NCBI GenBank assembly: GCA_964247055.1
Contig: OZ176051.1
Span: forward strand, 4,402,001-4,466,000
DNA length: 64,000 nucleotides
Source: Paragordius varius
Taxonomy: Eukaryota > Animalia > Nematomorpha
Direction: 5' to 3'
Numbering within the stretch: position 1 is the first letter of the stretch; each line of letters opens with the position of its first letter. Shown here piece after piece: positions 23,431-55,081 of the stretch. A program made the translations under genes and the position numbers. The notes below the pieces were generated by a model. That model was not told where the DNA came from. It did not search any database and saw only the letters and a list, made by a program, of their open reading frames with translations.

Positions 23431-23434
23431 TTAT

Positions 23435-27510: not shown

Positions 27511-27780
27511 ACAGATAGCTAAAAGCTTAGAATAATAATTAATAATGTAATGAAAATTTCGTAAAACTTTATAGGCAAAATTATTTATTATAACTTGGAT
27601 TGCATTTTCTTGCACATTACATAAAATAATAATTTAGGTAAAGAAAAACGCTTCTATTTTGTTAAGAGCACAGATTATCTTGCATAGAATTTTTTAAAAT
27701 GATATATTGATATTCAAATTACCAAAATTTTTTATTTCTTACGCATAATGCATTTTGAGTCTATTATTATTGAACATGAC

Positions 27781-28073: not shown

Positions 28074-30534
28074 ATGAAAACTATGATATTAGAGCGCAAA
28101 AATTAGTTTAGCATTTCGTGCGCAAAGTAAGTAAAATAGCAAAAGACCCCTTATACAAAAAGTAAACATAAAATGTTACACTCACATATAATTATTCAAG
28201 CCAATTAATAAAATTATATTATTAGCTATACTTAAACGAATTTGGGGGCTATATAAAAAAATTTTAGTACAAAATATAAAGAAGCCAGCCTTTTGTTTTA
28301 GTAGTTAATGACAAAGAAAAAAAATTAACCTATGATATTGTGCTTTTTGTTGGGATATAATTTACCCAAATGTTATCCGTTAAAAATTACATAGTTTATA
28401 AATATATAAGTTCTTTATTAATAATTATAAACTAATCATAATGACTTTTGCAATTAGAAAATATTAAAATGTTTAAGATTAAAAATTTATAATGATATAG
28501 GTATAAAAATAAATTACATTGCCGATATAAAATCAAAAAATTGGCAGATTTCAGAAGGTCTTCTTTCAAATGCATGGATAGGGGGGGCGTACCAATAACT
28601 ACTGTTACTTTTCAAGAACTTTGCGATGGAGATCCAATTTCTTTTACATGGTTTCTTAACCCTAATTTAAATTGATTATACCTTTTTGAAATGTTTTATA
28701 ACTTTTAAATAATTGGTGAAACAGGCACAGAGCACAATTTTCTTTAAAGCAGCTTTCCAATTTATGTCCATATATTTATGATAAATCGTTTCACTTACGT
28801 TTTAAAATACAAGAAATGAACTGTGTCAACTTGATGTTTGTTTTTTACAAATAATGTAATGCGTTATTAGGTGCATTAAATAAAATATTCAAAAATTTTA
28901 GCATAATATAAATGGAGATTATCTAATTAATGTGCTTCTCATCTTAAAATAATCGAAAAAAACCGCGATTTGGCATGAAAAATTTAAATATGTGAATTTT
29001 TCCCTATTAATTAAATAAGAATATGAATATGATTAAGTAAAAGGCGGGCGGAAAAAACTATAACCGGCGTAACCAATTATAATCATTAAAGTTAACACCA
29101 TAGACAGAATTTTTTACGCTTGCTCACCAAATCAGGCCTTCTTGCAAAAAAAGGCATTCAAAATGACGAACTGTGTCGAATATTCGGAAGTGGCCAATAT
29201 ACAGTGGTGGATCTACGGGGAGGATTATCTAAAAATACCAGTATATAAGCAAACAGAAAATTACAATAATTGCCATTCTGAACACAACTAACACAGTGTC
29301 TACAAATAAATAGGCTGATGAAATATATATATTCGGATAGGAAAATGTATCAGGACTATCATGGTCCGTTTAGTTTACCATTTTAAGAGTGATTTAAGAA
29401 AGTTTTTTACCCTTTTGTGGTAAATGCGCCATATCAAAAATTAGCAAAATCTGCGCACATTGTTCAAAATAAAATATTTTCGGTAAAAGGTAGAGGCTTC
29501 ATTCCAAAAAATATCATTAAAATATATAATAAACTATATTTAAAAAGCAAAACAATATATTTTAGGTTTTAGTTTTTAGGGCTCCAAAAGTTTCACATTT
29601 TTTTGCTTTGTTATTTCTTATAAAATAAACGCATGAATTTAAATAATATGGTAAATTTTGATAGCATAGTTTTATTTATAACTTTTATTACTAGTAAAAT
29701 TTTGTTGTACATACTTCACACATTTTTAAGCCATACGCGTTAAGATATTATGAAAACAACTTGTCTATATAAATCGGTAATGCTGAACATTTATATCACC
29801 TGAGAATTTCGTCTTCAAATTTATGTCAAATACAAATTGTGTTTTTTTTTCAAAATAAAATTTTAAGACAAAACCTTTAATTTTGGAGTGATAGAAATGT
29901 TCAGTGTCATCAAAGTATATAGAAAAATTTAATATCTTAAGTGACGTAGGCTGTAACATTGTTGAAAATTAAATTTTCAAAAAATTAATTTTTGAAAAAT
30001 ATATTTTTGATATTTAGCATATATTTAAAATTTTAATCGGGCGATTTCGGTTTTTGGCTCATATTTAAAGAAAGTCAACTATCTGATGGAAAAATAAAAA
30101 AATTTTTATTATGTTTTTTATTTGTAATTTATGATATATTTTAGTGATATTCTTTGGAATGAGGCATTTAGTTTTCACCAAAAAATATACACTTCCTTAG
30201 CTTTTTACTATATTGTCCTAGTTTATATATTGGGGTAGTTTTGTATACCAGAGCTTAATTTTGAGATAAACTGCAGTTTTGAAAGCTATTATAGTTAATA
30301 TTTAATAAATCGTTCTCAAATATTAGATAAAAATGTTTTACTTTTTACAGCTTTGTGACTTCTAGATTATAAAACTGGAATAGCTAAACACGATTATAAC
30401 GAACAGTTGATATTTAACAAGCTATAAAAAAATTTATCGAAAAAAATTGCGGCAAATAGTTTGTATAATTTTTCATTTTTTTGAAATTTTTTTTTTGGAT
30501 AACGCGCCCAAAAGGCTAAAGAAAGTATATCAAA

Positions 30535-31105
30535 CACTTCGATACAAATTGAGGTATTTAAATATCCCAGACTAAATTTAAATTAATATTTTAAAAAAAC
30601 TACTGAAGGAAACGGTCCCAATTTAAATTTATGGTATGCTTCTATCCTAATAAAAATTATATAAATATGCCAAAATATCCAAACAAAATTTTGTTTTGAA
30701 AAAAATTCTATGTCAAACAACTTCGACGCCATTTTTATTTTACAAAATTTTTGGCAAAATATCGTCCTCATTTTAGGGTTATAATAAAGGATAATTTTTT
30801 ATTTAAATTAAATCTAACATATATAGAAAAAGAAAAAGCGGTTTTATTTAAATTATTTATGTTTACGATTTCACACATGTCACGTAGACAAATTTTTTAC
30901 CTTTCGGGTTTATAAAATAAGTAATATTAAATATTTTTGAATAAAATTTTTTATAATTCGGTTATTAATGCTATATAAGTGCAAAATTTTGCCATGGTTT
31001 CGATTCCTCCCATATTTTTAAAATATTTGATTTTGAACTGGCCTGGGTTATCCAACTACCCCAATTAAAATCGGAAGACTAAAATGAGTGTGTTGTATCC
31101 AAGTG
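30535..31105 (-). mobile_element. piggyBac-like MITE copy (duplicate at 48490-49060)
   Basis: CACTTCGATACAAATTGAGG...CCAAGTG|TTAA. Confidence 0.7.
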
Positions 31106-31543
31106 TTAATTCGGCTTTATACCTTAAATACTATTTAAAATATTTAAATTTCGAAGCTCCACGATATAATAAAAGAAAATAGAGTGTTAAATAAATGTCA
31201 AATGCCAGTATCTAAGATAGAGCAGCTACCACTAAAGTGTAAATAACTTTCTTGAATCACTAGTAGGGGCCAAAATAAAAAGCACTATAATCCAATATAT
31301 TTTTCTTCAGAATATATATTACCGGAGTATTTTTTGTGGAGTACCATTATCTCTTCATTCTTTTTAAAGATCCAAAGCCTTCAAATATAATTAAATCTTT
31401 TGTAATAGTCGTAACACTTAATGACCTTTTGGAGTAGTTTTATATCCCAGAGCGATTCGAAATCTTCTCAATATCTAAAAAAGTATTTGTATTATGCCGA
31501 ATCCAAAAATATGCTTTCTTCAGCTTTTAAGACACATGCTTAA

Positions 31544-32105
31544 CACTTTGATTCAAATTGGGGGATCTAAATACCCCGACAATTTAAATTGATATTTTTA
31601 TAAAACTACTGAAAGAAACGGTTCCATATAGATTTATGCTTCGATCCTAATAAAAATTATATAAATAAGCCAAAATATTTAAAAAAATTTAGTTAGGAAA
31701 AAAAGTTCCCTATCAACTTGGAACTCATATTTATTTTACAATATTTTTGCAAAATATTGTGTTTATTTGATTCTTAGCCTAAAATTAAGTTTACATTTTT
31801 ATTAAAATCACATTTAACGTTGATATAAACAGAAAAAGTGGCATACTTGGCATTATTTTTGTATTTGCTTATGCACACATGTCATCTTGACTAAATTATT
31901 ATTCGGTTTTACTCCTGGATAAGTACTATCAAGTATATTTGAATAAATTTTTTATTATATTTCGGTTCATTAAATATGAGTACCAACCTTTGCCAGGTTT
32001 AATTTATTTCTTATTTTTTAAGCTATTTATTTTTAAACAAGTCTGGGGTATCTAACTACCCCAATTTGAATCAAAGTACTGAAATGAATGCCTTGGATAC
32101 AAGTG
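31544..32105 (-). mobile_element. piggyBac-like MITE copy (duplicate at 49499-50060)
   Basis: TTAA|CACTTTGATTCAAATTGGGG...GGATACAAGTG|TTAA. Confidence 0.75.
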
Positions 32106-32919
32106 TTAAAAATATTTTAAGAAATATGTACAAGTGTAAGGGAATCCTCATTCAAACTTTTTCGCTGAATTTATTTTCTTTATATTGTTTTAAATCGCTA
32201 ATGCAAAAGCGAACAAATATATAGGGTTAGAAAATGTAATAATTAACTTTTGCAAGCTTTAAGGTTACATCAGCAATATTTATTTCGAAATGAGCTGTTT
32301 ATTTCAATGTTTTGGAGTTGTTCCAATTTAGACACCAGAAGCCACAAAACTGGAAAAAAATTAAGCTTTTTTATCTAATACACAACAACAATGTTTAATA
32401 ATGAATATTTAACCAAAATAACTTTCAAAACAGTAGTATATTTACAAGATGAGTTTTGGAATCTCGGAATTTTCTAATAGATTGCGGACAAAAAGGTTAA
32501 ACGGTCAGGAAGAGTTAATTTAGAGTTAAGCAACGAATAATTTAATCAAAAATAATTGATAATAGTGTTTAGCATTATTAAATTCTGCAGAAAAAAATGA
32601 ATATCGTTTCCATAGCCTTAAAATAGCGAAGTAGCGCCACATTCCGATATATAAATTTCAAAATACCTTCAATTATTTTTTATCGTTATTCAATAGCGGT
32701 TTTTGTGCTTATTTTTATAGTTTTGGCGGACATATGGGATGTACAAAAATTATAGTATATATTAATATTGTTTCATTTCAAATATAGTAATGATATAATA
32801 TATTCTCCATTTGTAAAAAGGCTCTTAACTACAAGAATAACATAAACTCTATTTTTCAAATCATACGTAGCGAAATAAAAATATAAAACAGCTTACCACT
32901 TTTGAGTTTGCTTTTTGAG

Positions 32920-33791
32920 ATGTCTCCTTTGTTTATATTTTTACTAGCACTTATTATCCCTGTTAAATCAGATAATAATTTTGACGCTCATGCGCTTTCA
33001 ATTTACATAAATAATCTTGAAACTACATGGAAGGTTTATTTTTTATAAGTAAAGGCTTATCCCTTTTTTCACAATACCAGTTATGCTGACATTGAAGGTT
33101 TAATGGGCGTTATAGATACTGGTCATAAATTAACTCTGGGAAAACCTTTACATGACTTGTCATATATCTTCAATGATTTGCCAAAAAATTTTGACAGTCG
33201 CCAACAATGGCCAAATTGCCCAACAATTAAAGAAGTTAGAGATCAAGGATCTTGTGGGTCATGTTGGGTAAGTATAATTAATATATAATTTTGAATATTT
33301 ATTTATATTATTCCATTTTTTTAATTGTGTATCTTTTAGGCGTTTGGAGCTGTAGAGGCTATGTCGGATCGCATCTGTATAAATAGTAATGGAACTGTAA
33401 ATGCACACATTTCAGCCGAGGATTTATTGTCGTGTTGTAAGAACTGTGGTTATGGGTAAATATCTCTATTTTTACAACTTTAGAGTCGTTAAAAAGTATA
33501 ATTAATTTTTGGAAAATGTTTGGTATTTGACACATTTTACATGAGATTTACTTAAATTAATATGCCTTAATAATCTCGATTCGCTATTATTAATGGTTTT
33601 AAATGATTTGTCTCAATGTATACTTTTAAACATATAACATAAATTATATATAAAACTTAGTTGTAATGGTGGTGTACCCGGTTTAGCCTGGGAATATTAT
33701 AAGAAATTTGGACTTGTAACCGGAGGTCAATACGGTTCTCATACTGGCTGTCTCCCCTATGAAATACCTAAATGTGAACATCACACTACTG
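32920..33791 (+). CDS. CTSB: Truncated duplicate of cathepsin B exons 1-4, ending at the contig end (33800)
   Basis: Matches 50875-51746 at offset 17955; exons 32920-33033, 33055-33267, 33340-33455, 33661-33791. Confidence 0.85.
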
Positions 33792-33800
33792 GTCAATATT

Positions 33801-34000
33801 NNNNNNNNNNNNNNNNNNNNNNNNNNNNNNNNNNNNNNNNNNNNNNNNNNNNNNNNNNNNNNNNNNNNNNNNNNNNNNNNNNNNNNNNNNNNNNNNNNNN
33901 NNNNNNNNNNNNNNNNNNNNNNNNNNNNNNNNNNNNNNNNNNNNNNNNNNNNNNNNNNNNNNNNNNNNNNNNNNNNNNNNNNNNNNNNNNNNNNNNNNNN
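33801..34000. other. Scaffold gap (200 N)
   Basis: Run of exactly 200 N. Confidence 0.99.
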
Positions 34001-34069
34001 TATTTTAGCCATAAAAATATATGATACATAATCATTGGGGTAAATTGCGTAAAGTGTAAGTTTTATTAC

Positions 34070-37000
34070 CGTTGTTTATAGATTCCGAATTAGCTTGCAG
34101 ATTATCCTCTTTAAAATCTGTCCCAAATATTTTTCCCAATGAAATAGGTATTCTATATTGATTATAATTAATAAATATTAAAATATAATAACTCTTTCTA
34201 CACGCAAATAAAAAAATATATTACGTTGCATTTATAGGCGCTAGTACATTAGTTGTTGATATAGAAATTTTAGATTGTGAGATAGGGCGGTTGGAATTCG
34301 TCTCAGGCAAACAATCTTTTCCCGTATTACAAGCGGGTTGTCCAATATTTTTGCCATTAGTATATTCATTTTGGTCAAATCCAAATTCATTGTTTGTTGA
34401 AATTTTTGTTGCAATTTTGCCCATTTTATTCGTTGGTGATAAAGCGTTTTTGCTTGTACTTTTTTCAACATTAATCTCATTTTCATCGTCTTCCTCATCC
34501 AAGAAAAATGAAATTCCGCTAAAATCTGAAGCAGGTACCCCAAATTCAAAATTTATGGGTAGGGTAGGGATATGCCTGTTATTTGGCATAACCACAGGTA
34601 TAGTAGGTATCTTGGAGAGGGGCGGTAACTTTGGTAGGGTATATGATGCATTTTGTTCCTCATTATTAACATTTACTACTTGTGTTGCTATAGAGTGTGT
34701 AATAGTGTTAGAACCTACTACTATATTAGGATTAGTATTATTGTTAAGGAGACCAATTCCTAGGGCATTTTTAATGGTTTCAGTTGCCTTACATGATTTA
34801 AGGTATGTTGGGACACTTCCTACTACTAGAGTATTTTCAACAAATGACGAGGCTGGTTTGACGCTATTGTCATTATATTCTTTAGAATGATGATTCTTTG
34901 TACGTAATGAGTGTGTGGTATCATCCGAACTGTGAATAAAAAACAATTTTTTTTAAATACATAAAAAACCGAAATTTGTGGTTGAAAATCAATTTTTGGT
35001 GTCTAGCTCCGGTTAATTTGTGTTTAAATAGCTAAAATTCAGTTGAATTTTTTTTACATCATACCGTGAGTATATATAGCCTAAAAATATGTATGGTGTG
35101 GTATTTTTTACCAATAAGTGTAAAAAATCTTTTAATATCAAATAAAAAGTCTATTTAAAATAGGGTCAACAGTATATTAAATATTAAAAAAAATCAAAAA
35201 TTTGTACTTTTTTGGCATCGTTTTAAACCGACAATCTCTGATACCAGTTTTTATAAATTCAAAAATATTTTTTATAAAGAAAAAAAAAACATAAATAAAT
35301 CTTACCTTAAAACTACACTAGATGATTGGGTCGAACTGAAGGAATCACTTTTAAAACGCCGAAAATTTGCCGATTTATCTTGTGGTATTTGGGCCTTCCA
35401 TTCTCCAATCTCATTCCAGTTGTTTTGCGTTAAATCTACATACACAAAAAAATATATAGGTTATCTTTACCCCCTTATCAATTTATATTTTGATTTCTTA
35501 AAAGTATCAAGAAATATTATTTAGAATGTCATCCCAATTTTGAGTTAAATTTAGTTATACACATAAAAATAGATGGTTTAAAATATATTAACTTTGGGAT
35601 CATTTTGTTTATTACTTCCTAATAATTTTAAATTAGTTTCTAATTAAAAATATGGATGATAATGGAAAGACTTAAACATCTGTAATCTTAAAGTTAAGGC
35701 GTATTTAATTTGGGGAAATGCTTAGGCCTATAATCTTTTAACATTTACAACGATTGAAAGAAAATACCCTAAAATGTATTCCAACATAAAAAATTGATAT
35801 AAATATACTACCATTTTTGCTGATTGGTTCATCTGTGCCATTTTCGGGTGACTTTGATTTATAATGAAAATTATTATTTGTATTTGGATGCTGTTTGCGA
35901 AACATTGGCCGATTTCCATGGTTTGAAAAATATGCCCCACGTCCTCTGTTAACATATCTAACATGTGAATATTAGACGTTAAAAAGAGGAATTTATGATT
36001 AAATTATATATGAATTACGATAAATACGCATATTATATAAAAAATTACCTTTTGTTTTGATGTGTGGGATGATATGGTGGCCGTTTTTCGTCCTTTTCGT
36101 TCGACATTTTTGATTCTGTCTCGCAAAGATCTATAAAAACAATGTTTGGTTTGATTAATTGAAATATAAATAAAGTTTTTCATAATGAAGTGCGTTCTCT
36201 ATAAGGAGCTCTTATAACTAGTTTATAAAAACTTTTTTTGTTTTTAATAAAATTCTAAGTTTAAAGTTGTGGAAGTTTCTAAGTTGAATATTGTACTCAT
36301 AATAATAAGAAAAAAATATTATATTAAAACTTTATTTTTATATTTTTCAAAAGAATCATAATGTGGCCATATAAAATTAGGTTTATTTTTTTAAATAATT
36401 TTTATACTGTTGGTTTCTTGCGGAGCATTCATCCTTGAAAGTTCTGTTTTGCTCCTAAATCCATTTTGATTTCTTCTTACGGATGTTGAAAATTCCCTTG
36501 TACCTTTTGTGAATTTATGCTTTACTCTAGGAGCAAAAAATTATAAAGGTTAAATTAAACAATAAAAATAAAGTGTAAATTTTGAAAAACTACCTAGGCT
36601 CGATTTGATCCTTTTTATCGAGTATCTGAGGGTTTTCTTTGCCATCACTTATTTCCTTTTCCGCCACATTTTTTATTACCTCCGTATTTTGGTTTTGGTT
36701 ATTTTTTATATCGTCTTTTTTAAGTTTGTCGTTGGTATCTTTTTTAAAAGTGGATTTGTCGGCTTTTTTGCTAGAATCAGAATCTCTGTCACCCTTTGTA
36801 TCCCCATGAGATTTTTTCTTTTTGGTCAAGGTTTTCCATTCACTTTTCTAAAAAATTATAATTGATAATTTACCAAGGAAGTATAACTGGTAAATGATTC
36901 AAGCAACATGTTAACTGCTCTATTTACATCATTATCGGCATCGTGTAAGGCAAAAACAGCTTCATCGCTTGTTTTATTGGTCAACTCCATAACTTGTTTA

Positions 37001-37232
37001 ATTTTGTTTTTAAGATTATTATCTTCATCCTTTGTTTTCCGTTCCAAATCCGTATAAAATGCATTTTCGGTCGACTAAATTATAAATATTAATATTAAAA
37101 AATATTTTTAAATTAAATTATTTAACATTAAAGAGATATTATTCACACCTTTTTAGAAGGATAAGTATTCACCGACTTGTATGTTGACATTATTTCATGA
37201 AATTTATTAGGAACAGCGAGCAATAGGCTCAT
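34070..37232 (-). CDS. UBAP2L: Second copy of exons 1-9 of the UBAP2L-like gene, interrupted in intron 9 by the gap
   Basis: Matches 16115-19277 at a constant offset of 17955. It would continue directly into exon 10 at 21-340 if 679-34000 were removed. Confidence 0.8.
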
Positions 37233-40200
37233 CACATTAATTAAATGATATATTTATATATACAATATTTACAAGAATAAATGCGAATAATAATAAAAAA
37301 ATTATAAACTAAAAATTAAAACAATGCACCGCCATTAATGAATGTATGTAAAACATTAATCCATTATTTAAACTTGGATTTTAGTCCTTCAATTCAAATT
37401 GGGGTAGTTAAATACCCCAGACCTGTTTATTAAATAATTTAAAAAAATAGAAGGAATCAAAACCATGGCAAAATTTTGCACCTATATAAAATTGATAAAC
37501 CGAAATATATAAAAAAATTTATTCAAAAATACTTAAATTTTTTTAATGTAAAACCCAAAGGTAGAAATTTAGTTTATGTAACATATGTGCATTGGTTAAA
37601 TTGAATAATAATACAAATTAAACCTTTCTATTTGTATCAATGTTAGATGTAATTATAATAAGAAATAAGCTTTAACTGTAAAGTTTGAATCAAATAACGT
37701 GATATTTTGCATAATAGTAAAATAAAAATGACGTCCAAGTAGTTTGACATGGAACTTTTCTTTTTCAAAACAAAATTCTATTTAGATATTTTGGCTTTTT
37801 TATATATTATTTATTAGGATGAAAGCATAAATATAAATTGGGACAGTTTTCTTCGGTAGTTTTTTAGAAATATCGATTTTATTTTAGTTTGGGGTATTTA
37901 GATACCCCAATTTGAAACGATGTTATAATATACGACAGTAAATTACATACATATAAAATTTGAAAAATAATATTATACCAAAACATAAGCTAACATTATG
38001 TTTTTCAAACATTTATTGATTACTTTTTTGCTTTTTTAAATTCTATTCTATTTTAAGAAACCTTATCAACACCATTATTTTCTCACTTTTTGTCCTGGTT
38101 TGTGATTGATGTGTATAACACCCAAAACCTGAATATTGTCAACATAGTCATTATTATCAAACATTGCATGTATTAGATATAAAAGCTAATATTTGTACGG
38201 TTTTGTGTAGAGATTAAAAATGGGGCAGCTCCAAAACACGATAGAAACGAACATCTAATATTGAAATATAATATATCAAATTTTTCTTTTAAAATGTAGC
38301 TTGAAATTATTAGATTATTTACATTTTTAATCTCCATACACATTTATTTGCCTGTTGCATTAGAAATATAAAATTTGTGGAAAAAAAGGCGGCAAAAAGG
38401 TTATCGGGATTTTTAGTTATAAATTAAAAAAATATTTTTTGTATAATGCGCCTAAAGGTTAAAAAAGCATGTTTTTTCATTTAAATATCTTTACTTTTTG
38501 GAATATTCAAACTTCATATCGCTTTGGTATATAATTTAACCTTAATATTCCATTACCTTTGGGGGTATACAGAGCGATTTTATGTTTGAATATCCCAAAA
38601 ATATTTTTGGTATATATCAAATTAGAAACATGCTTACTTTAGCCTTTTAGGTGATAAAATAATTTTCACTTAAAAATGTAAATTTTAAAAAAATCAGCAC
38701 TTTTTTGCCGCCATTTCAATTTTATAAAATCAACATAGCCACAAGGATATTATTATGGTTAGAATTTATAAATAATTAACTTTAAAGAGCTTTCAGGCTA
38801 CATTTTTCGGAAAGATTTTAATATCGGATGCTCCTTTCAATCGTGTTTTGGAGATGTTCCAATTTTAGACTCTAGTCACTAAAATAACATTTAAAACAGT
38901 TGTTTGTTTACATATTGACCTTTGGGATATAAAAACTGCCCTTATAAGGTAAACAAGGACAAAAAATTAAAAGGTAATGTAGTGCTAAATGATAATGGAG
39001 TGTTAAAATCAAAAATAAATTATATTTTTTATTTGAGATTATTTAACCCTTCGTTTCCTTTTGGAGTAGTTTTAAAAGCGAATATTGAATTTTTAAAATT
39101 AATTAAGGTATTCCTTTGTTTTAACACTTGGATATAACACATTCATTTTATTCATCCGATTCAAATTGGGGTAGTTGGATACCTCGATCCTGTTTAAAAT
39201 TAAATACTCCAAAAAACATGGATTGGAAACCATGGCATTTTATGAATGAAAATATAATTAAAAATCATTGGAAAATATTTGATATTACTTATTTTAGGGT
39301 AAAACCCAAATGTTAAAAATTAGTCAACATGACATGTGTGCATTACAAAATTTAAAAAATAATATAAAATACACCACTTTTTCTATTTCTATAATGTTAG
39401 TGAATTAAATAAAATTGGCTTAAAATTTAGCTTTAAAATTAAATAAACTAGATATTTTGCAAGAACATATTTACATTTCTATTTTTTCATACTTTGCAAT
39501 TTTAAACAAAAATGGCGTCCTTTTTTACAAAACTAAATTTTATTTAAATATTTTGGCTTATTTATATAATTTTCATCAGGATAGAAGCATAAATTTAAAA
39601 TGGGCCTGTTTTTTTATTACTTTTAATATTTCGTCTAGGGTATTTAGGTACCTCAATTTGAACTGAAGTGTTAAAACTGGTTTTTTAGCTTTTGCGCATT
39701 ATACAAAAAATTTAAAACAAAGTAAAATTGTAAAAAATCCTCATCTCAAATTTTTCCGCCATTTTTTTCTATTAATTTTTTTAACACTTCCCTACCTTTT
39801 CATATTTTGTCCTAATTTACATTTTGTTTAGTTTTATATCCCAAAGCTCAAAATTATAGTTGTAAAAGTTATTTTGTTAAAATTTAATTATCAAACAGTT
39901 CTTATGTTTAAGATAAAAAAATTACGGTTTTGTGACTTCAATAGTCTGTAGGACAGCTCCAAACGATTGAAACTAACAGATGATATTAAAATCATAATAT
40001 ATCAAGTTTTTGCTGGTAATATGTGGCATGTATTTTTAAAGTTAATTATTTACATTCAGTAACCATAATTTACATTTATATTCCTGTTGCATTCGCGATT
40101 TAAAAAATTTATAGAAAAAAATAGCATCAATAAGATGATGATTTTTTTACAATTTTACTTTTTTTAAACAATTTTTAGTATAATACGCCTATAAAGCTAA

Positions 40201-43200
40201 AGAGGGCATATGTTAAATTAGGCTTAATATCTTAAATACTTTTTACGATATTCAAATTTCAAATCGCTTTGGGATATAAAACCAACTCAAAGGGTATTGG
40301 AATGTTACAATCGCTAATACAGGCAAATTTATTGTTAGAAAATGTAAATAATTAACATTAATTGATTTCAGGCTATATTTTACCAGCAAAAACTTGATAC
40401 ATATTAATTTTAATATCAGCTAATCGTTTGAATCGTGTTTTCGAGTTGTCCCAATTTTAGACTCCAGAATTCCCAAAATTAAAATATAAGCATTGTTATC
40501 TAATACATTAAATGTTTGATAATTAAATTTTAACTAAAATAACCTTTAAAACTGTAGTTTATTTACAAAATTGAGCTATGGGATATAAAGCTACACCAAT
40601 ATGTAAACTAGGGTAAAAAAGTTTATAGGTAATAAAGTGTTGTATTATGGGTTAGTCCTTATCATTTTAAAAAATTGTTTCTGAGCAATAGTAAATAATT
40701 TAATTGGTCATTCTTTTTCACAGTAACAAATATATTCCTATTTGCAAAACACTTGACAGGATAAATTCACCGGTATTGAACTGGCTAAGGTTATAGAATG
40801 CATGTTAACATACATACCCAACAAAAAATAATATTGAAATAACACTTAACCTTTTAATTTATTTTAATTGATCACCTTTTGGGGTATTTTTGTACTCCAA
40901 AGGTGAATTTGTATAACTATTGTTTTAATGGGTTTTGATAAATTTTATTGATTAACATTGTCTCTTGTATTTTAGATAAGAAAGCTTATATTTTTACAGT
41001 TTCCAAATTATAGTGTACCAAATCTGGATCCCAGATTAAAACAAACCGCTCATTGTAAAATAAATATGAAGTATTTGCTAATAAAATGCAAATAAAAAGT
41101 CAAAACTTACACAACTTTTTACCATGATCCATTTATTTGCTGTTGCATAGCGATTTTGAATAATCCAAAAAGGCAGTCCAAAGTTTGAGATGAGGATATT
41201 TTTCAATTTTAGATATTGTAAAAAAAATCAGGCGCCCAAAAGGCTAAAGAATGCATACTTTTAAATTTGAGCCAATATCAATACCTTTGATGTAGACTTC
41301 ACCCCAAAACGATTTTGTTTTCGAATAAATTCATGTTTCTTTTGAACCTTTTGGCTACGAGATCACATTTTTTGGAATATTTACCTTATTGTTAATTTGA
41401 TGAGAAGATAATATAAGAAACGTGAAATGATTTTAATTCGGTTTTTTTTGTGGTTTATATATACTAATTTTAGGTGTACATTTGCATTATAACAATAAAA
41501 TTTCAAGTAACAAAGGATATATTATTTACATAGTACCAAAAAATATAAAAATAATACAATTCAAATCTCACAAAAATTATGATATACAACCAAAGTATAT
41601 ATTTCATATTTGCATGTAACATCAAATCTCACAGAAAATTATGATATACAACCAAAGTATATACTTCAAATTTGCATGTAACATCACTTCACTCTTAGGG
41701 GAAATAATACTAGTTTGAATGATAATACATGTTTTGGGTGTGTCGACGAATGTTTGCATAAGGTACATCATAGTTTGAAAGATAACATCACGTGTTGTGT
41801 GTCGACGAATCATTTAATCTATGCCTCACTCCATCCTGGACCATTTCTTGTTAAACTGGTCCAGTCGCACTGAAATATTATCGGCGCTGTGGGGAATCTG
41901 AACGATCTCCTTTTGTAACGGCAAATCCTCTTTGCATTGAAATCGTAGAGGGGTGTAGCGACTCTTTAGCTCGGCCTGGGGAGGTAGGCGTACTGATCAA
42001 TCTTGTTAAAAGCTTGTCCGCGCCAATCTAACTTACCCAACCATCAAATGTTGAATGATGTGGGAGTCCTCCGCAGCCATTTGTTGATAATGATCCCAGA
42101 GTCGCTATAGATTCTTAGCCCGTTCGCTTTCAGTGCACTGGCGGTTGAACATATTTTTGGCAGTGTTTTTTAATCTACATTAGCGAATTGGTTGGGTTTT
42201 CCGCATTTGCAATTGCGGTTCCAGGCGGGACATTTGCTTGGCCCATGAACACTCCCATAACCCTTGCGCGAATGTGTCAGAGGTTTTGATTGTTGTGATC
42301 GATTATAATTATTACCATTGCTATAATTGGTATTATCATTATATTTTTTTTTGATGGACATTTTGGTGATATTGGCAATTGACATTGTCATGCTTGTTGC
42401 ACTTTCTCTCCGAGTTTGGAACCCGGTGGTGTTATGTTAGATTTGTTGTTAGATTAGTTCGGATTCGCTTGGCTACTAGATGTTAATTTGAAAAGAAGAA
42501 AATATAAGAAACGTGAAATGATTTTTATTCGGTTTTTTTGTGGTTTATATATACTAATTTTAGGTGTACATAATTTGCATTATAACAATAAAATTTCAAG
42601 TAACAAAGGATATAATATTTACATAGTACCAAAAAAATATAAAAATAATACAATTCAAATCTCACAAAAAATTATGATATACAACCAAAGTATATATTTC
42701 AAATTTGCATGTAACACTTATCAAGTAATATTTATCATAAATACACAAATTTAATAAAGTTTCTCTATTTTTAATATGTCAAATTTTATTTATCATAAAT
42801 TGTATCCACAAAAATATCCTGATATATACAGTATGCATTTTAATGGTTGCCTATTTCACACGATAGTAGGGTTTGTAACACAGGAGTTTATGGAAAAAAT
42901 AAAGGAAATAATTGTTTGTTCAACATTTTGTTGTTTTTTTCCATACACTAATGAATTGAAAATTGCCCTACGATAGTGTGCAATAAAAACCATTAAAATG
43001 CTAAATGTATATTCTGATAGAGAAATATATCAGTTTCATGATGCTTTTGGTGTGATTTAGGGAAGTTATTTATACGTTTGTGGTAAGTGCTCCATATCAG
43101 TAAATGGCGAAATTTGCGACATTTTTTTAAAACAATTTTTTTTGGTGAAAGCTAAATGTTTTTTTACAAAAAATATCACTAAGATATACAGAGCAAAAAA

Positions 43201-46200
43201 ACCTGTTAACGTATATATTTTATAACAGGAAGATGTATTTGGATTATCATGGTGCTTTTGTGGCCCTTACTAGTTATATAAAAAAGTTATTTACACTTTT
43301 GTGATGCTCATCAGAAAATGGCAAATGCAGATTTTCTTAATATTTTTTTAGTAAAAATTTCCAAAAAATACTATATAACATAAGTAAAAAAATTTTCAAA
43401 AAATTTAATTTTTAAATGGGTGCTTAGAAAGTCCCAGATTTTGCTCTTGTAAAATGGGCTAGTTCTCTATAAACACAAAAATGCCGGGTATTAGCGATAT
43501 AAATTCTAAATATATGGTAAAAACTAAAAATTTAGAAAATGATTACTTTTTTCAAATATTTAATTTTTAGCAAAATTTCATTCAAGCCTACTTGCTAGTT
43601 TGAGGCATGCTGGAAACAAAACGGTTTAAGATATTATAAAATACTTTTTCTATATAATTAAATGATGCTGAAAATTTCTAAATTCGTTCGTCTTTAAATT
43701 TATGTAAAATATAAACTGTGTTTTCTACTCAACAAAAATGAATAAAATGCATTGTCAAAGCTAAAACCATCCCATGAATGTAATAGGCTCCGATCACTAT
43801 TTTGTGACAATTAAAATTAAGTTTAGGTTGAAAGCTAAATTACACCAAAAATGTAATAAGCATTTTGACTTTTCCAAGTGAATAATGAATTTAAATACTA
43901 TTCTTCCAGATAATATAGATTATCTGGACGCCAACGACCACTGGCTTAGGACCATAACAGCAATCAATGAACTGATTCTCATTTCCCACTTTATAGAAAA
44001 CATCCCAACATTTTGAATTGTATGATTCTCTTGTTTTAGCTACCAAAAGCAGATTAGTCAAAATAAATAACAATATTACTGAATACCGGTATATACTCGC
44101 AATTCAAAAGATAATCCAGAAATGACATCAATGTTGACTATCTTGCGATTTGTAAGACTTAAAACTTGCTAATTCTAAAGGCGAGAATATATAGGAAAAA
44201 GTACATTTGTTAGTCCTTTTCAACTCCCTCAATCTGCAGGGCATCAGCGATTCCGACAACGTAATATTAACAAAAAAACATGATGTAATTAAACTTTGGG
44301 ATAAATTTGGAGCTTTTCTTTATTGTGATGACCAAACTAACCAAATTCATCCTCAAGATAATACATAAACGAATTTCAACCATGCTTGATTGTGAAATTT
44401 CTGTTGTACAAGCTAGCCTAGCGAAACACTACAAATCACATAGATAATAGTTATATTATAATTCAGAGATATAAATTCGGAAGTTAATACTGCTGTTTTT
44501 TGGGCTCCAGTATGGCATTAGACACAGTTAACGAGAATAGAAGATTTTATAATCTTCCGGAGTTTTCTCTCATATAATTCTTTGGTTGCAATCGTGTTAT
44601 TCCCAAACAGCTGCTATCAAAACACAATACGGTCCCACCGACTGGCTCCCTATAATATTGTTAGAGAGATATGCGCCTTACTCACCTGTTCAACTTATAC
44701 ACTAAATCTTTAATGTGCAATTGTAAACTTTCCAAACATAATGCAGGGCGCATCTGATGTTTTACTCTTCGCAATCTCCGGTACGCCGACGATACGGTTT
44801 TTTTGATAGAATCACACCCGGAAATGATTTATTACTACCGTCGAAGCAATTTTGATGGGTCAGAAGCTAGCTATAAATATATTATCCTCAACGTCCCCAG
44901 TTACCATTATCGCTCAATTCCTCCTCTATCGAAACCGATACTACAAGTATTTAGGTATAATTGAATCGACGGCAGTTTAGATCCCAACACAGGCTGTTTA
45001 TAATTGGAACTCCTCTGTCACAAGAGTTTCAACCAAAGTAGCCATTCTAATGGTGATAGTTTACCCAGTCGCTATTTACGGGTCTGAATCATGGGGATGT
45101 AAATCTACCGACGAAGCCCGCATTAACTCATTTCAACTGTGGTGCTTCCGGAAAGTTTTGGTATCTCCTGGACTATGATTAATATATACTTCCTCGAACC
45201 AGAATTTTGGCTTTATGATCTGGTAATCTACAGACATATAAATCTCGGCCATTTTCTAAGATCCGATTCTCTTTAAAAAACATTCTCCTTGGGTCGATTG
45301 TACTCGCAAAAAAGGCGGCCCTAAAAAGAGCTGGCTCGATATCCTAAAATCAGTTACAAACCTTACCTTTTTCCAAACAATTCGAAAATCTCAAGATCGT
45401 ATGGAATGGAAAACGCTTATTTGAGAGAAAGCTAAGAGTCGCTGCGCGACTAGATTCTAGCATACACAGATAGCTAAAAGCTTAGAATAATAATTAATAA
45501 TGTAATGAAAATTTCGTAAAACTTTATAGGCAAAATTATTTATTATAACTTGGATTGCATTTTCTTGCACATTACATAAAATAATAATTTAGGTAAAGAA
45601 AAACGCTTCTATTTTGTTAAGAGCACAGATTATCTTGCATAGAATTTTTTAAAATGATATATTGATATTCAAATTACCAAAATTTTTTATTTCTTACGCA
45701 TAATGCATTTTGAGTCTATTATTATTGAACATGACCAGGGGTGTCCAACACGCGGTCTGTAGGCCGCATACCGCCCTCCAATATGTGCGGCCCGCGAAAA
45801 ATTTCTAAATTAAATAAATACAAAATTTTGCAAAAATATGCTGATAAATATCAGTAAAATTGATATTTTTTGAACGAATCGGAATAAGTCCTATCGATTG
45901 GCAAAGAACTAGAAAAAAATTGGAGTAAATAGTACTTATATTGTGTTTGCCTTTTCACAGTTTTATGTCAAAAAATTATTAATGACCATATATTTTTCTA
46001 AGCGGCCCCGATGAGTTGGACACCCCTGATGAAAACTATGATATTAGAGCGCAAAAATTAGTTTAGCATTTCGTGCGCAAAGTAAGTAAAATAGCAAAAG
46101 ACCCCTTATACAAAAAGTAAACATAAAATGTTACACTCACATATAATTATTCAAGCCAATTAATAAAATTATATTATTAGCTATACTTAAACGAATTTGG

Positions 46201-49200
46201 GGGCTATATAAAAAAATTTTAGTACAAAATATAAAGAAGCCAGCCTTTTGTTTTAGTAGTTAATGACAAAGAAAAAAAATTAACCTATGATATTGTGCTT
46301 TTTGTTGGGATATAATTTACCCAAATGTTATCCGTTAAAAATTACATAGTTTATAAATATATAAGTTCTTTATTAATAATTATAAACTAATCATAATGAC
46401 TTTTGCAATTAGAAAATATTAAAATGTTTAAGATTAAAAATTTATAATGATATAGGTATAAAAATAAATTACATTGCCGATATAAAATCAAAAAATTGGC
46501 AGATTTCAGAAGGTCTTCTTTCAAATGCATGGATAGGGGGGGCGTACCAATAACTACTGTTACTTTTCAAGAACTTTGCGATGGAGATCCAATTTCTTTT
46601 ACATGGTTTCTTAACCCTAATTTAAATTGATTATACCTTTTTGAAATGTTTTATAACTTTTAAATAATTGGTGAAACAGGCACAGAGCACAATTTTCTTT
46701 AAAGCAGCTTTCCAATTTATGTCCATATATTTATGATAAATCGTTTCACTTACGTTTTAAAATACAAGAAATGAACTGTGTCAACTTGATGTTTGTTTTT
46801 TACAAATAATGTAATGCGTTATTAGGTGCATTAAATAAAATATTCAAAAATTTTAGCATAATATAAATGGAGATTATCTAATTAATGTGCTTCTCATCTT
46901 AAAATAATCGAAAAAAACCGCGATTTGGCATGAAAAATTTAAATATGTGAATTTTTCCCTATTAATTAAATAAGAATATGAATATGATTAAGTAAAAGGC
47001 GGGCGGAAAAAACTATAACCGGCGTAACCAATTATAATCATTAAAGTTAACACCATAGACAGAATTTTTTACGCTTGCTCACCAAATCAGGCCTTCTTGC
47101 AAAAAAAGGCATTCAAAATGACGAACTGTGTCGAATATTCGGAAGTGGCCAATATACAGTGGTGGATCTACGGGGAGGATTATCTAAAAATACCAGTATA
47201 TAAGCAAACAGAAAATTACAATAATTGCCATTCTGAACACAACTAACACAGTGTCTACAAATAAATAGGCTGATGAAATATATATATTCGGATAGGAAAA
47301 TGTATCAGGACTATCATGGTCCGTTTAGTTTACCATTTTAAGAGTGATTTAAGAAAGTTTTTTACCCTTTTGTGGTAAATGCGCCATATCAAAAATTAGC
47401 AAAATCTGCGCACATTGTTCAAAATAAAATATTTTCGGTAAAAGGTAGAGGCTTCATTCCAAAAAATATCATTAAAATATATAATAAACTATATTTAAAA
47501 AGCAAAACAATATATTTTAGGTTTTAGTTTTTAGGGCTCCAAAAGTTTCACATTTTTTTGCTTTGTTATTTCTTATAAAATAAACGCATGAATTTAAATA
47601 ATATGGTAAATTTTGATAGCATAGTTTTATTTATAACTTTTATTACTAGTAAAATTTTGTTGTACATACTTCACACATTTTTAAGCCATACGCGTTAAGA
47701 TATTATGAAAACAACTTGTCTATATAAATCGGTAATGCTGAACATTTATATCACCTGAGAATTTCGTCTTCAAATTTATGTCAAATACAAATTGTGTTTT
47801 TTTTTCAAAATAAAATTTTAAGACAAAACCTTTAATTTTGGAGTGATAGAAATGTTCAGTGTCATCAAAGTATATAGAAAAATTTAATATCTTAAGTGAC
47901 GTAGGCTGTAACATTGTTGAAAATTAAATTTTCAAAAAATTAATTTTTGAAAAATATATTTTTGATATTTAGCATATATTTAAAATTTTAATCGGGCGAT
48001 TTCGGTTTTTGGCTCATATTTAAAGAAAGTCAACTATCTGATGGAAAAATAAAAAAATTTTTATTATGTTTTTTATTTGTAATTTATGATATATTTTAGT
48101 GATATTCTTTGGAATGAGGCATTTAGTTTTCACCAAAAAATATACACTTCCTTAGCTTTTTACTATATTGTCCTAGTTTATATATTGGGGTAGTTTTGTA
48201 TACCAGAGCTTAATTTTGAGATAAACTGCAGTTTTGAAAGCTATTATAGTTAATATTTAATAAATCGTTCTCAAATATTAGATAAAAATGTTTTACTTTT
48301 TACAGCTTTGTGACTTCTAGATTATAAAACTGGAATAGCTAAACACGATTATAACGAACAGTTGATATTTAACAAGCTATAAAAAAATTTATCGAAAAAA
48401 ATTGCGGCAAATAGTTTGTATAATTTTTCATTTTTTTGAAATTTTTTTTTTGGATAACGCGCCCAAAAGGCTAAAGAAAGTATATCAAACACTTCGATAC
48501 AAATTGAGGTATTTAAATATCCCAGACTAAATTTAAATTAATATTTTAAAAAAACTACTGAAGGAAACGGTCCCAATTTAAATTTATGGTATGCTTCTAT
48601 CCTAATAAAAATTATATAAATATGCCAAAATATCCAAACAAAATTTTGTTTTGAAAAAAATTCTATGTCAAACAACTTCGACGCCATTTTTATTTTACAA
48701 AATTTTTGGCAAAATATCGTCCTCATTTTAGGGTTATAATAAAGGATAATTTTTTATTTAAATTAAATCTAACATATATAGAAAAAGAAAAAGCGGTTTT
48801 ATTTAAATTATTTATGTTTACGATTTCACACATGTCACGTAGACAAATTTTTTACCTTTCGGGTTTATAAAATAAGTAATATTAAATATTTTTGAATAAA
48901 ATTTTTTATAATTCGGTTATTAATGCTATATAAGTGCAAAATTTTGCCATGGTTTCGATTCCTCCCATATTTTTAAAATATTTGATTTTGAACTGGCCTG
49001 GGTTATCCAACTACCCCAATTAAAATCGGAAGACTAAAATGAGTGTGTTGTATCCAAGTGTTAATTCGGCTTTATACCTTAAATACTATTTAAAATATTT
49101 AAATTTCGAAGCTCCACGATATAATAAAAGAAAATAGAGTGTTAAATAAATGTCAAATGCCAGTATCTAAGATAGAGCAGCTACCACTAAAGTGTAAATA

Positions 49201-50874
49201 ACTTTCTTGAATCACTAGTAGGGGCCAAAATAAAAAGCACTATAATCCAATATATTTTTCTTCAGAATATATATTACCGGAGTATTTTTTGTGGAGTACC
49301 ATTATCTCTTCATTCTTTTTAAAGATCCAAAGCCTTCAAATATAATTAAATCTTTTGTAATAGTCGTAACACTTAATGACCTTTTGGAGTAGTTTTATAT
49401 CCCAGAGCGATTCGAAATCTTCTCAATATCTAAAAAAGTATTTGTATTATGCCGAATCCAAAAATATGCTTTCTTCAGCTTTTAAGACACATGCTTAACA
49501 CTTTGATTCAAATTGGGGGATCTAAATACCCCGACAATTTAAATTGATATTTTTATAAAACTACTGAAAGAAACGGTTCCATATAGATTTATGCTTCGAT
49601 CCTAATAAAAATTATATAAATAAGCCAAAATATTTAAAAAAATTTAGTTAGGAAAAAAAGTTCCCTATCAACTTGGAACTCATATTTATTTTACAATATT
49701 TTTGCAAAATATTGTGTTTATTTGATTCTTAGCCTAAAATTAAGTTTACATTTTTATTAAAATCACATTTAACGTTGATATAAACAGAAAAAGTGGCATA
49801 CTTGGCATTATTTTTGTATTTGCTTATGCACACATGTCATCTTGACTAAATTATTATTCGGTTTTACTCCTGGATAAGTACTATCAAGTATATTTGAATA
49901 AATTTTTTATTATATTTCGGTTCATTAAATATGAGTACCAACCTTTGCCAGGTTTAATTTATTTCTTATTTTTTAAGCTATTTATTTTTAAACAAGTCTG
50001 GGGTATCTAACTACCCCAATTTGAATCAAAGTACTGAAATGAATGCCTTGGATACAAGTGTTAAAAATATTTTAAGAAATATGTACAAGTGTAAGGGAAT
50101 CCTCATTCAAACTTTTTCGCTGAATTTATTTTCTTTATATTGTTTTAAATCGCTAATGCAAAAGCGAACAAATATATAGGGTTAGAAAATGTAATAATTA
50201 ACTTTTGCAAGCTTTAAGGTTACATCAGCAATATTTATTTCGAAATGAGCTGTTTATTTCAATGTTTTGGAGTTGTTCCAATTTAGACACCAGAAGCCAC
50301 AAAACTGGAAAAAAATTAAGCTTTTTTATCTAATACACAACAACAATGTTTAATAATGAATATTTAACCAAAATAACTTTCAAAACAGTAGTATATTTAC
50401 AAGATGAGTTTTGGAATCTCGGAATTTTCTAATAGATTGCGGACAAAAAGGTTAAACGGTCAGGAAGAGTTAATTTAGAGTTAAGCAACGAATAATTTAA
50501 TCAAAAATAATTGATAATAGTGTTTAGCATTATTAAATTCTGCAGAAAAAAATGAATATCGTTTCCATAGCCTTAAAATAGCGAAGTAGCGCCACATTCC
50601 GATATATAAATTTCAAAATACCTTCAATTATTTTTTATCGTTATTCAATAGCGGTTTTTGTGCTTATTTTTATAGTTTTGGCGGACATATGGGATGTACA
50701 AAAATTATAGTATATATTAATATTGTTTCATTTCAAATATAGTAATGATATAATATATTCTCCATTTGTAAAAAGGCTCTTAACTACAAGAATAACATAA
50801 ACTCTATTTTTCAAATCATACGTAGCGAAATAAAAATATAAAACAGCTTACCACTTTTGAGTTTGCTTTTTGAG

Positions 50875-52282
50875 ATGTCTCCTTTGTTTATATTTTTACT
50901 AGCACTTATTATCCCTGTTAAATCAGATAATAATTTTGACGCTCATGCGCTTTCAATTTACATAAATAATCTTGAAACTACATGGAAGGTTTATTTTTTA
51001 TAAGTAAAGGCTTATCCCTTTTTTCACAATACCAGTTATGCTGACATTGAAGGTTTAATGGGCGTTATAGATACTGGTCATAAATTAACTCTGGGAAAAC
51101 CTTTACATGACTTGTCATATATCTTCAATGATTTGCCAAAAAATTTTGACAGTCGCCAACAATGGCCAAATTGCCCAACAATTAAAGAAGTTAGAGATCA
51201 AGGATCTTGTGGGTCATGTTGGGTAAGTATAATTAATATATAATTTTGAATATTTATTTATATTATTCCATTTTTTTAATTGTGTATCTTTTAGGCGTTT
51301 GGAGCTGTAGAGGCTATGTCGGATCGCATCTGTATAAATAGTAATGGAACTGTAAATGCACACATTTCAGCCGAGGATTTATTGTCGTGTTGTAAGAACT
51401 GTGGTTATGGGTAAATATCTCTATTTTTACAACTTTAGAGTCGTTAAAAAGTATAATTAATTTTTGGAAAATGTTTGGTATTTGACACATTTTACATGAG
51501 ATTTACTTAAATTAATATGCCTTAATAATCTCGATTCGCTATTATTAATGGTTTTAAATGATTTGTCTCAATGTATACTTTTAAACATATAACATAAATT
51601 ATATATAAAACTTAGTTGTAATGGTGGTGTACCCGGTTTAGCCTGGGAATATTATAAGAAATTTGGACTTGTAACCGGAGGTCAATACGGTTCTCATACT
51701 GGCTGTCTCCCCTATGAAATACCTAAATGTGAACATCACACTACTGGTCAATATTTTTTAATTTATAATTTGAATAACTTATAAACAAGATTTTTCATAA
51801 AAGTTGGAAAGTTTTTAATCTTTGAAAAGGTTAATAATTATTTTATAATATATTGGTTAATGTATCGTAATACAATTATTATTTGAATGATATTTTTAAT
51901 TTTTGATATAAAGAATGCTAAATAGACTATTTTGCTACAAGCTACGCATTTTGTTATTTTTTTGCAATATATTTTTATAATTTATAAATATTATAATAAA
52001 TACTTGTTTTGTAAAAGTATTAGAAATTAATAAATAATTTGTATGGTTTGTTTGTTTTGTTAAATAATATCGCCAAATATTAAAAGTCATTTTTTGCAAA
52101 TATAAATTGTGATTTACAAAAATATTTCTCATTGTTCGACTGTATATCCATAGCTTTCATATAGTGCAACTTTTTTGCAATTATATAATTAACATTTAGA
52201 AATGGTAAAGTTTAATTTCATTGATCATTTACTCATAACAATTATTTATGTTAGAGTGAGCGCAATATGTAGTTATCATTTA

Positions 52283-52325
<43 letters not shown>

Positions 52326-53428
52326 GAATATATTTTGTATAATTTATTTTAGGTAAATACAGTCCATGTGGAAAAACTGTAAAAACACCCAAATGCGAAC
52401 AACAATGTGAATCGAATTATGGCAAATCATACAAGGATGACAAATTTTACGGTAAAATTTATCAAACCAAAGTTTTTGAGACAAAATGTTTAAAAGATTA
52501 ATATTTAGAGGGAGATAAAAATCTTTACAATTTAATTTTGTTTTTAAGATGTATTTTATCGTTTTCGCTTCCTAAATAGTGAAGAAAAATGTAAATTGGT
52601 AAAACAATCAATTTTCTGATTCTATATGATATCTAAGCTCAACGATTAAAAAAATGCTTTTTGTTTAGTATTTGTTCTTACTTTAATCCTTACGTTTTTT
52701 TATACAAAAATCTAATATTTTTTAGGTAAAGATGTATATTATGTCCCAAGTCAACCCAAACAAATTCAGGCCGAGTTATTTCTTTACGGACCAGTAGAGG
52801 CGGCCCTTGACGTCTATGAAGATTTTTTGCTTTACAAATCTGGTATAATTCATATTTCATTAAAATAATTTAATATCATCGGTTATTAATGTATTTATGA
52901 CTTTGAAATTAATTTTATACGTTTCTCAGATGATCATTAAATATTACTGAATATGAAATAGTAGAAGACCCAACTTTCATGTATAAAAAATGGCAAATTA
53001 AATGATCAATGATTCATTTTTCAATTGTTATAATTATATATATGTAATTATTATTTTAAAATTTTATTTTTCTTCTATAGTTTAAATACATTTGCCCATG
53101 TAAAACTGTATTATTAAGCGCGATTAATACCACAGTTTATTAATTGTTGTTAAAATCATCCCAATTTATATCATGTATATTTGATTGATTTTTGTTTTAT
53201 ATTCCGTAGGTGTTTATCAACACAAAAAGGGTCGAGCTTTGGGTGGACACGCCATTAAAGTCCTGGGGTGGGGGGAGGAAGATGGAATCCCTTACTGGCT
53301 TGCAGTTAATAGTTGGAACGATGATTGGGGTGATAAGGGTTTCTTCAAAATTTATCGGTAGAAAAAATAGACACGTTTTTTTTGGTTATTACGACTTAAA
53401 TCTCCCATAAATTTCTCAAATAATAATG

Positions 53429-53496
<68 letters not shown>

Positions 53497-54386
53497 GATT
53501 CTTTTTATTAAAATAAATTTTGGGCTTAAAAGTACGGATATTAACGAGATTAATATCATTATATTTTGTTTATAGTACATTAACTTCTTCAGATCAAAAC
53601 TGGGATAAAAAAGTAAATAAAAACTATGAAATAAAATGACAATAAAAAAGGTTTTTAGTTTTTAGAATTTACATGGTCCACCTACATATTTGAAGAAGTT
53701 TTTACTAGTATAACCATTTAATCAATATTATTTTTATTATAATAATATTCGCTCTCTTAAGCCCAAAATTAATTTTATTAACTATATGAAGATGCGAATC
53801 GAATCCCTCAATTATATTTATATATATGTAACTTATATAATAGCTTTTAAAATCACATAAATTAATATATTCAAGTAAAAAATAACATTTTTTTTCAATA
53901 TAATAGGTTATTGGTCTAATTTATATGATATTTTTATGTTTGCACATGTAGTAGTTTTAAAGCGATATAAATTAGGTTAAAATTGAATATATGCATACAT
54001 ATGTTAAAAAAATTGTTTTTTATACTTTTTATCGGTTTTAGCAGCTTGTATATTTTTATTAACATTCAGTACTTATGTACGTACATATTTACCCTTTATA
54101 TTTTTTATTCTTATGAATATTTTTCTTATAAATAAATAAACTATTTTTAATTGCGTATGTAATGCGATAAATATATTCTTTTTTATTTCTATGTATTTTT
54201 TAATAATTTAATTATATGTATAATGTGATTAGAGGGCGTAATGAATGCGGAATCGAATCAATGATATACGCTGGACTTCCGGATTATGAAAGGAGCTCAT
54301 ACACACCCTTGATAACTTCTAACGGTATAAAATATTTATTAATAAAACATTGTGGAAAAATTTGGATTAAAAAGAAATTTTTTTAA
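50875..54386 (+). CDS. CTSB: Cathepsin B (papain family C1A) preproenzyme
   Basis: Exons 50875-50988, 51010-51222, 51295-51410, 51616-51746, 52353-52451, 52726-52842, 53210-53357, 54233-54386 (or 54233-54324 plus 55082-55155). Signal peptide [17 protein letters not shown], propeptide TTWK|AYPFF, mature [30 protein letters not shown] (catalytic Cys), occluding loop CEHHTTG, GGHAI (His), VNSW (Asn), [10 protein letters not shown]. Confidence 0.95.
53432..53495. repeat. (TA)n microsatellite in cathepsin B intron 7; shorter ones at about 11579-11607, 13760-13790 and 52286-52322
   Basis: Direct reading. Confidence 0.95.
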
Positions 54387-55081
54387 ATATGTTTGGATAT
54401 TTATTTAAAAACTTTTAATAATTAATTATCGTTTAAAAAATGAAAATATATTTTTAGAAAGGGGGTATGTTTACTAAACTCGCCCATGGGGGTCGTTTTC
54501 CTTTAACATAGGACTCCTGCACAGATTTTTTAATATAATTCCCCCTATAATAACCCAATAATGGGAAAAAATACATGGCTTAAAATCCATCGTGATTCTT
54601 TTTTGGGATAATTTAAAAATATTTAATAAATTGTAGTTATGTTCTACGGATAAATTTTAATAACATTTAAAAATTTAAATTATAACTGTCTTTATTTAGT
54701 TATAAGGGCTTTAAAATATCCTTACTAATTAATCTGTGAGAAAGATATCACAATTTTAAATAATTACTAATAAAAACTAGGACTTTCTATCGTAAAAGAT
54801 TAGCATAGGCTAATTATTTTATAGGTACTCTTTTTATTTTTAATTGAGGTAGGATAGAGGGCTAGATTACCAATTTTAACAAATTTTTATAATTATTGAT
54901 AAAGAAATAAAATAATTGCATGTTTTATTATACTTATAAAATGTTGGCAATCCCTCACAATTCATTGAAGTTTTAATTATCATTTTTAAATAATTTGTAT
55001 ATAATATGTTTTAAAACAATTAATGAGAAAATAAGTTTTTTATCTAGATATATTTATTATTTTATTATCATATTAATTTAG

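Follow-up and report, generated by a model that had tools for sequence, protein, structure and literature searches.

A putative 21-nucleotide spliceosomal intron at an old intron position in a horsehair worm cathepsin B gene

The plus strand of the window, by which we mean the whole analysed stretch of 64,000 nucleotides, carries a complete cathepsin B gene in eight exons, the seven introns of which measure 21, 72, 205, 606, 274, 367 and 875 nt and all have GT and AG ends. Exon 1 (50875..50988) opens with the ATG at 50875 and comprises 38 codons for the signal peptide and the start of the propeptide (MSPLF...INNLETTWK). It is followed by intron 1 (50989..51009, 21 nt, phase 0) and exon 2 (51010..51222), which encodes the remainder of the propeptide and the beginning of the mature enzyme, including the catalytic cysteine in QGSCGSCW, and runs into GTAAGT, the donor of intron 2 (51223..51294, 72 nt, GTAAGT...TTTTAG). 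Exon 3 (51295..51410) covers positions 28-61 of Pfam Peptidase_C1, and exon 4 (51616..51746), behind an intron 3 of 205 nt, contributes the His-His pair of the occluding loop in PKCEHHTTG; we take CEHHTT to be the occluding-loop motif, the human counterpart being CEHHVNG. Exon 5 (52353..52451) follows intron 4 (606 nt, containing an (AT)n run), and exon 6 (52726..52842) follows intron 5 (274 nt). Exon 7 (53210..53357), after intron 6 (367 nt), provides the catalytic histidine (GGHAIK) and asparagine (NSWNDDWG) and matches Peptidase_C1 with E 6e-14, while exon 8 (54233..54322; GRNECGIES...), after intron 7 (875 nt), has a provisional 3' end. Matches to Peptidase_C1 (PF00112) were obtained for exons 2, 3, 4, 6 and 7 in colinear order, with all three catalytic residues in this domain context (exons 2 and 7); in a comparison with the PDB, exon 2 retrieved cathepsin B chains (E 3e-15), and in Pfam it matches Propeptide_C1 as well as Peptidase_C1. 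Because glutamine is encoded by CAA and CAG and the exons are free of in-frame TAA and TAG, the genetic code is the standard one. A profile and sequence search of the assembly (110.6 Mb, 44 contigs) recovered no further cathepsin B, and hence no paralogue for comparison.

At the 3' end of the gene, the open frame continues after PLITSNG through 54323-54383, and AACG at 54322 leads into a GTATAA donor. In other alleles, 54348 and 54378 are sites of insertions or deletions, so that the coding sequence probably ends earlier than 54348 or on a further exon.

The special feature of this gene is the segment 50989-51009, GTTTATTTTTTATAAGTAAAG, 21 nt with GT at its start and AG at its end. The initial annotation had described this segment and its flanks, and its description agrees with the window letter for letter. 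Upstream, the reading frame closes with TTWK; downstream, it reopens with AYPFF...QGSCGSCW; read straight through, the segment gives GTT TAT TTT TTA TAA, an in-frame stop four codons past TTWK. It had further been stated that the alternative AG dinucleotides are unusable, and this was borne out when all GT/GC-AG and AT-AC pairs near the site were listed, since acceptor 51009 is the sole partner that leaves donor 50989 with an open frame. The same listing yielded a single other frame-keeping GT-AG pair, 50917-51009 (93 nt), and among the canonical pairs only 50989/51009 retains both the frame and the conserved TTWK motif. With the local base composition, the chance of finding GT and AG at the exact ends is ≈ 0.0017. 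The end motifs are weak in comparison with the other introns of the gene: the donor GTTTAT has T at +3, in contrast to the GTA or GTC donors of the longer introns, and the acceptor is AAG, in contrast to TAG throughout the others. Inside the segment, the letters include a run of six T (50994-50999) and A at intron positions 12, 14 and 15. The length of 21 nt (22 and 23 nt in other alleles, see below) lies beneath the usual animal minimum of ≈ 30-50 nt.

The homology on both sides of the junction was evaluated with hhalign, by which the exons were compared one at a time with a profile built from the N-termini of 12 procathepsins B. Residues 20-38 of exon 1, ending in TTWK, align with profile columns 25-43 (E 9e-6), and exon 2 aligns from its third residue with columns 47-111 (E 2.5e-35). 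The spacing K-AYPF-F found here equals the spacing K-AGHN-F in panda cathepsin B, so that the alignment closes without gap or insertion once exactly 21 nt are excised; without exactly these nucleotides, the predicted protein is colinear with other procathepsins B. Even in the unspliced read across the 21 nt, positions 8-39 of Pfam Propeptide_C1 (PF08127) match 50959-51075 with one TAA inside, at 23.7 bits, which is below the cut-off of 32.7. Exon 1 alone gave no match in the PDB or Pfam, and the profile of homologues was needed for it. A word search with exon 2 returned only fragments, with at most 61% identity over most of the exon, and among these fragments there was neither a close hairworm orthologue nor a transcript-derived protein crossing the junction.

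It could be argued that the pair 50917-51009 (GTTAAA...AAG) is used instead, which would render the TTWK stretch intronic. This is the only other GT-AG pair with an open frame, it shares the acceptor, and 93 nt would be an ordinary length for the cathepsin B gene concerned. Such an intron, however, would remove the best-conserved motif of the propeptide, I-N-x-x-x-T-T-W-K, which lies in frame at 50959-50988 (E 9e-6, see above), and it would also cut into the region of signal-peptide cleavage. Moreover, both listed insertions/deletions within 50917-51009 (described below) fall into the last 21 nt, for which the chance is (21/93) squared, or ≈ 0.05. Use of the longer intron is thus considered very unlikely.

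The initial annotation had taken as its premise that cathepsin B genes carry a phase-0 intron at TTW(Q/K)/AG.NF, and an intron at this very position is indeed present in four other organisms, represented by the loci L005, L007 and L012 and by the open reading frame P0011. The single homologous intron seen whole is that of L005, an environmental animal contig, where TTWK is encoded by ATGACAACTTGGAAG, followed by GTTGGT as the start of an intron of 544 nt and by TGCAG in front of GCTGGAGTGAACTTT (CAG before GCTGGA). In L007, from Saccoglossus kowalevskii, AAAAAG precedes GCCGGAGTGAAC, the exon starting between TTTTAAAAAG and GCCGGAGTGAACTTT; in L012, a Logan contig from another AT-rich organism, TTTTCAG precedes GCTGGACGT, with the exon start between TTTTTCAG and GCTGGACGTAATTTC. 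The upstream TTWK exon was not found within 3 kb of the Saccoglossus locus, and in L012 no upstream exon was evident in the stretch upstream. P0011, a genomic open reading frame, has ...FSQ in front of the boundary and AGENF behind it. The following intron, after GSCGSCW, is likewise common to the hairworm gene and to L005, L007 and L012, and many genomic open-reading-frame fragments continue past SCW. In codon boundary and phase, the hairworm intron thus corresponds to the first coding intron inherited from the ancestral cathepsin B gene of animals, which extends over 544 nt in L005 and over 21 nt in the hairworm.

Further evidence comes from the alleles. Contigs from four sequencing runs (X1-X4) of two samples were compared with the window over 50500-54400; as they cover introns and flanks alike, the runs represent DNA, and among the sequencing runs listed with the gene there is no RNA; in presumed RNA runs with the same species label, none of the sampled words occurred. 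In X1 (contig 50784-51167), which is perhaps the sample behind the assembly, the segment has 21 nt and is the same as in the window, and X4 (contig 50949-51664) also has 21 nt. In X2 an additional A behind 50994 brings it to 22 nt, and in X3 an additional TA behind 50990 brings it to 23 nt. GT and AG are intact in the alleles of all three lengths, and the in-frame TAA is found in every allele when the changed letters are read. The joined (spliced) form is absent from the contigs of X1-X4, which argues against a processed copy.

The variants evaluated are the best-supported ones, with another 94 substitutions and 31 insertions/deletions outside the listed set. Two of the 12 listed insertions/deletions in 3.9 kb lie inside the 21-nt segment (P 0.002), and none of the 12 is located in an exon (P 0.025). 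Among the listed exon differences, 19/23 are synonymous and 19/23 occupy codon position 3; with an expected synonymous share of 0.21-0.33, the former count corresponds to P ≈ 1.5e-6. Individually, three of four listed differences in exon 2, all four in exon 3 and eight of ten in exon 7 are synonymous, and most of the listed exon differences lie downstream of the TAA. With regard to the listed variants, the segment therefore varies as non-coding DNA (+1, +2 nt) and its flanks as coding DNA. The synonymous bias past the TAA, together with a segment whose length is not a multiple of three in some haplotypes, points to purifying selection on the frame, and the combination of such length alleles with synonymous exon change argues that the gene is under selection while the segment is not translated. 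Along these lines, insertions or deletions that are not multiples of three inside a segment, combined with exclusively synonymous change outside, could serve as a test for tiny introns that needs DNA only and no RNA.

Two observations on the same contigs may be added here. Exon 7 and its flanks (53147-53399) are covered by a single contig of sample S1, which departs from the window 16 times in 253 nt, almost always by a synonymous change, and other S1 contigs show no difference from the window; such a pattern suggests either a very divergent second haplotype (≈ 6%) or a mosaic choice of haplotypes in the assembly. Long (AT)n microsatellites occupy 52290-52322 (intron 4) and 53434-53495 (intron 7), where the short-read contigs are interrupted in every run.

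The allelic data bear directly on the possibility of a dead gene or null allele, in which the 21 nt would be a stop-carrying insertion that is never spliced. The TAA so shortly behind TTWK and the restriction of the listed runs to DNA would be in accordance with it. In a dead gene, on the other hand, one would not expect 19 synonymous against four non-synonymous listed exon differences between haplotypes that are ≈ 5% apart in non-coding DNA, nor would the catalytic residues and the other splice-site pairs all be intact in the sole cathepsin B of the assembly. The supposed insertion would also have had to land exactly at the ancestral intron position and to end in GT and AG, and this explanation is therefore regarded as highly unlikely.

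Hardly more can be said for a segment that stays in the mRNA, with the stop being read through or bypassed, or with translation starting at the methionine of GLMGV in exon 2. It would suit such a mechanism that 21 is a multiple of three in the reference allele, but the alleles with 22 and 23 nt would shift the frame of exons that are under selection. The standard genetic code, with glutamine at CAA and CAG and exons free of in-frame TAA and TAG, is a further argument against it, and a downstream start would cost the signal peptide and half of the propeptide; retention is thus scarcely credible. The same holds for removal by a non-spliceosomal route, that is, by a cut of the IRE1/XBP1 or tRNA-endonuclease type. 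Unconventional introns of the XBP1/HAC1 type are of similar size, which is the point in favor of this route. The ends of the segment are GT and AG, however, and its position is that of a classical spliceosomal intron in other animals. Sites of IRE1 are marked by the loop motif CNG/NNG, which is displayed neither by AAG/GTT nor by AAG/GCT at the two borders.

The weakest of the alternatives is an assembly artefact at 50989-51009, with a longer intron collapsed or bases wrong: the region is AT-rich, and N gaps and a redundant block of 17.8 kb are nearby, but contigs assembled de novo and independently for four runs of two samples extend unbroken across at least 50949-51142 with 21, 22, 23 and 21 nt, and the contig tables have no joint or loose end at the site, so that the probability of an artefact is negligible.

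The redundant block deserves a comment of its own. An identical copy of the 21 nt is located at 33034-33054 on the plus strand, as an assembly duplicate: 16046-33800 equals 34001-51755 with one mismatch in 17,755 nt (21093 A versus 39048 C), and the repeated block adjoins a gap of 200 N (33801-34000). Likewise, 1-678, in front of the N gap 679-878, equals 15368-16045. When the genome was searched with exon 2, two places only were recovered, both in the repeated block. The suspicion voiced in the initial annotation that the second copy is probably not independent was therefore well founded, the same locus having been assembled twice. The middle contig seems to be either an overlap left unmerged or a haplotig, by which the genes of 16-34 kb are doubled.

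Taken together, 50989-51009 most likely represents a genuine 21-base spliceosomal intron of the U2 type (GT-AG), the first of a single cathepsin B gene, which occupies an old position and has shrunken. We assign to this reading a probability of about 0.88, the splicing itself being deduced from the genomic sequence. Colinearity, intron position, length alleles and selection all favor what had been proposed from the first inspection of the DNA, a spliced 21-nt GT-AG intron with an AAG acceptor. It can be rationalized that the ancestral phase-0 intron between TTWK and AG.NF has shrunk to 21-23 nt, which would be near the physical minimum. Ordinary GT-AG splicing by the spliceosome would excise GTTTATTTTTTATAAGTAAAG and join ACATGGAAG to GCTTATCCC, from which normal pre-pro-cathepsin B would result. 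The A at intron position 12, 14 or 15, which is six to nine bases before the AG, is a candidate for the branch point. Translation of a transcript that escapes splicing would presumably stop at the in-frame TAA, which is kept in all three alleles.

The intron of the cathepsin B gene may not be the only one of its kind. On the minus strand, 18893-18918 comprises a 26-nt GT-AG segment, GTAAATTATCAATTATAATTTTTTAG (GTAAAT...TTTTTTAG), which ends in TTTTAG and connects two open frames in phase 0 just after a UBA-like domain (NRAVNMLLESFTSYTSL before the junction, KSEWKTLTKKKK behind it). Judged by its ends and its frame, it is a predicted second tiny intron of the window. The long open reading frames of the window are of low complexity.

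As to the organism, the mitochondrial contig C44 (15,693 nt) encodes a COX1 with six TGA codons, which fits the invertebrate mitochondrial code. The top four named matches of its ATP6 fragment are Gordionus sp., G. wolterstorffii, Parachordodes pustulosus and Gordius sp., with 52-58% identity, and matches beyond these four do not exceed 48%. By mitochondrial ATP6 the genome is thus placed in Nematomorpha, as a species distinct from those matched. The GC content of the window (≈ 27%) equals that of Gordionus montsenyensis (26.93%). Just upstream of COX1, at 6670-7458 of C44, a tandem array contains an open frame of 262 codons made of NINKYRFFLFYIIYVKILS(V/D)GQDF units, which is probably a repeated control region and not a gene. 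A COX1-like fragment with six stops on a nuclear contig (C1:10612280-10612597) probably represents mitochondrial DNA that was copied into the nuclear genome.

[quoted passage not shown] Introns of this size had long been thought absent from animals, until publications from 2019 to 2026 described them in dicyemids and myxobolid myxozoans, and the survey of 51 animal genomes makes no mention of Nematomorpha (PMC13644364). The word 'intron' is absent from two hairworm genome preprints. Against this background it appears reasonably probable that horsehair worms constitute a third independent animal lineage with spliceosomal introns of ≈ 20-30 bases, which would occur, mostly at the 5' side, beside kilobase introns in the same transcripts. 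If this is true, one animal spliceosome handles both extremes of intron length, and the presence of a 21-base beside an 875-base intron would mean that the minimum intron size does not depend on wholesale compaction of the genome. There is a practical side to this as well. Gene finders and spliced aligners with a minimum intron of 30-60 bases break or drop such genes, and universal genes reported as 'lost' from hairworm genomes would then be missing in part because gene finders are unable to model such introns. The universal-gene completeness of hairworm genomes is low (71.6% for Gordionus, according to the hairworm genome preprint), and we infer that this low completeness may be linked to tiny introns.

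The comparison with known systems brings out both similarities and differences. In the myxobolid Myxozoa and in Dicyema japonicum, introns are ultra-short, and by median length nearly all of them are tiny (PMC13644364). In contrast, the hairworm gene mixes its 21-nt intron with introns of 72-875 nt. In Schistosoma, genes have small introns at the 5' side with sizes that rise from the 5' end, the small ones measuring ≈ 26-35 nt or more. The first four introns of the hairworm cathepsin B gene rise in the same manner, from 21 over 72 and 205 to 606 nt, albeit in a different phylum. Tiny introns of 20-35 nt are also found in Paramecium and other ciliates (PMC5014332). Their length is similar to the 21 nt of the hairworm. 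A rule described for Paramecium holds that introns with a length divisible by three carry an in-frame stop, such that a retained copy ends translation. The hairworm reference allele shares this trait, combining a length that is a multiple of three with an in-frame stop. On the other hand, ciliates have almost exclusively tiny introns and a different genetic code, whereas the hairworm, as an animal, uses the standard code and has long introns too.
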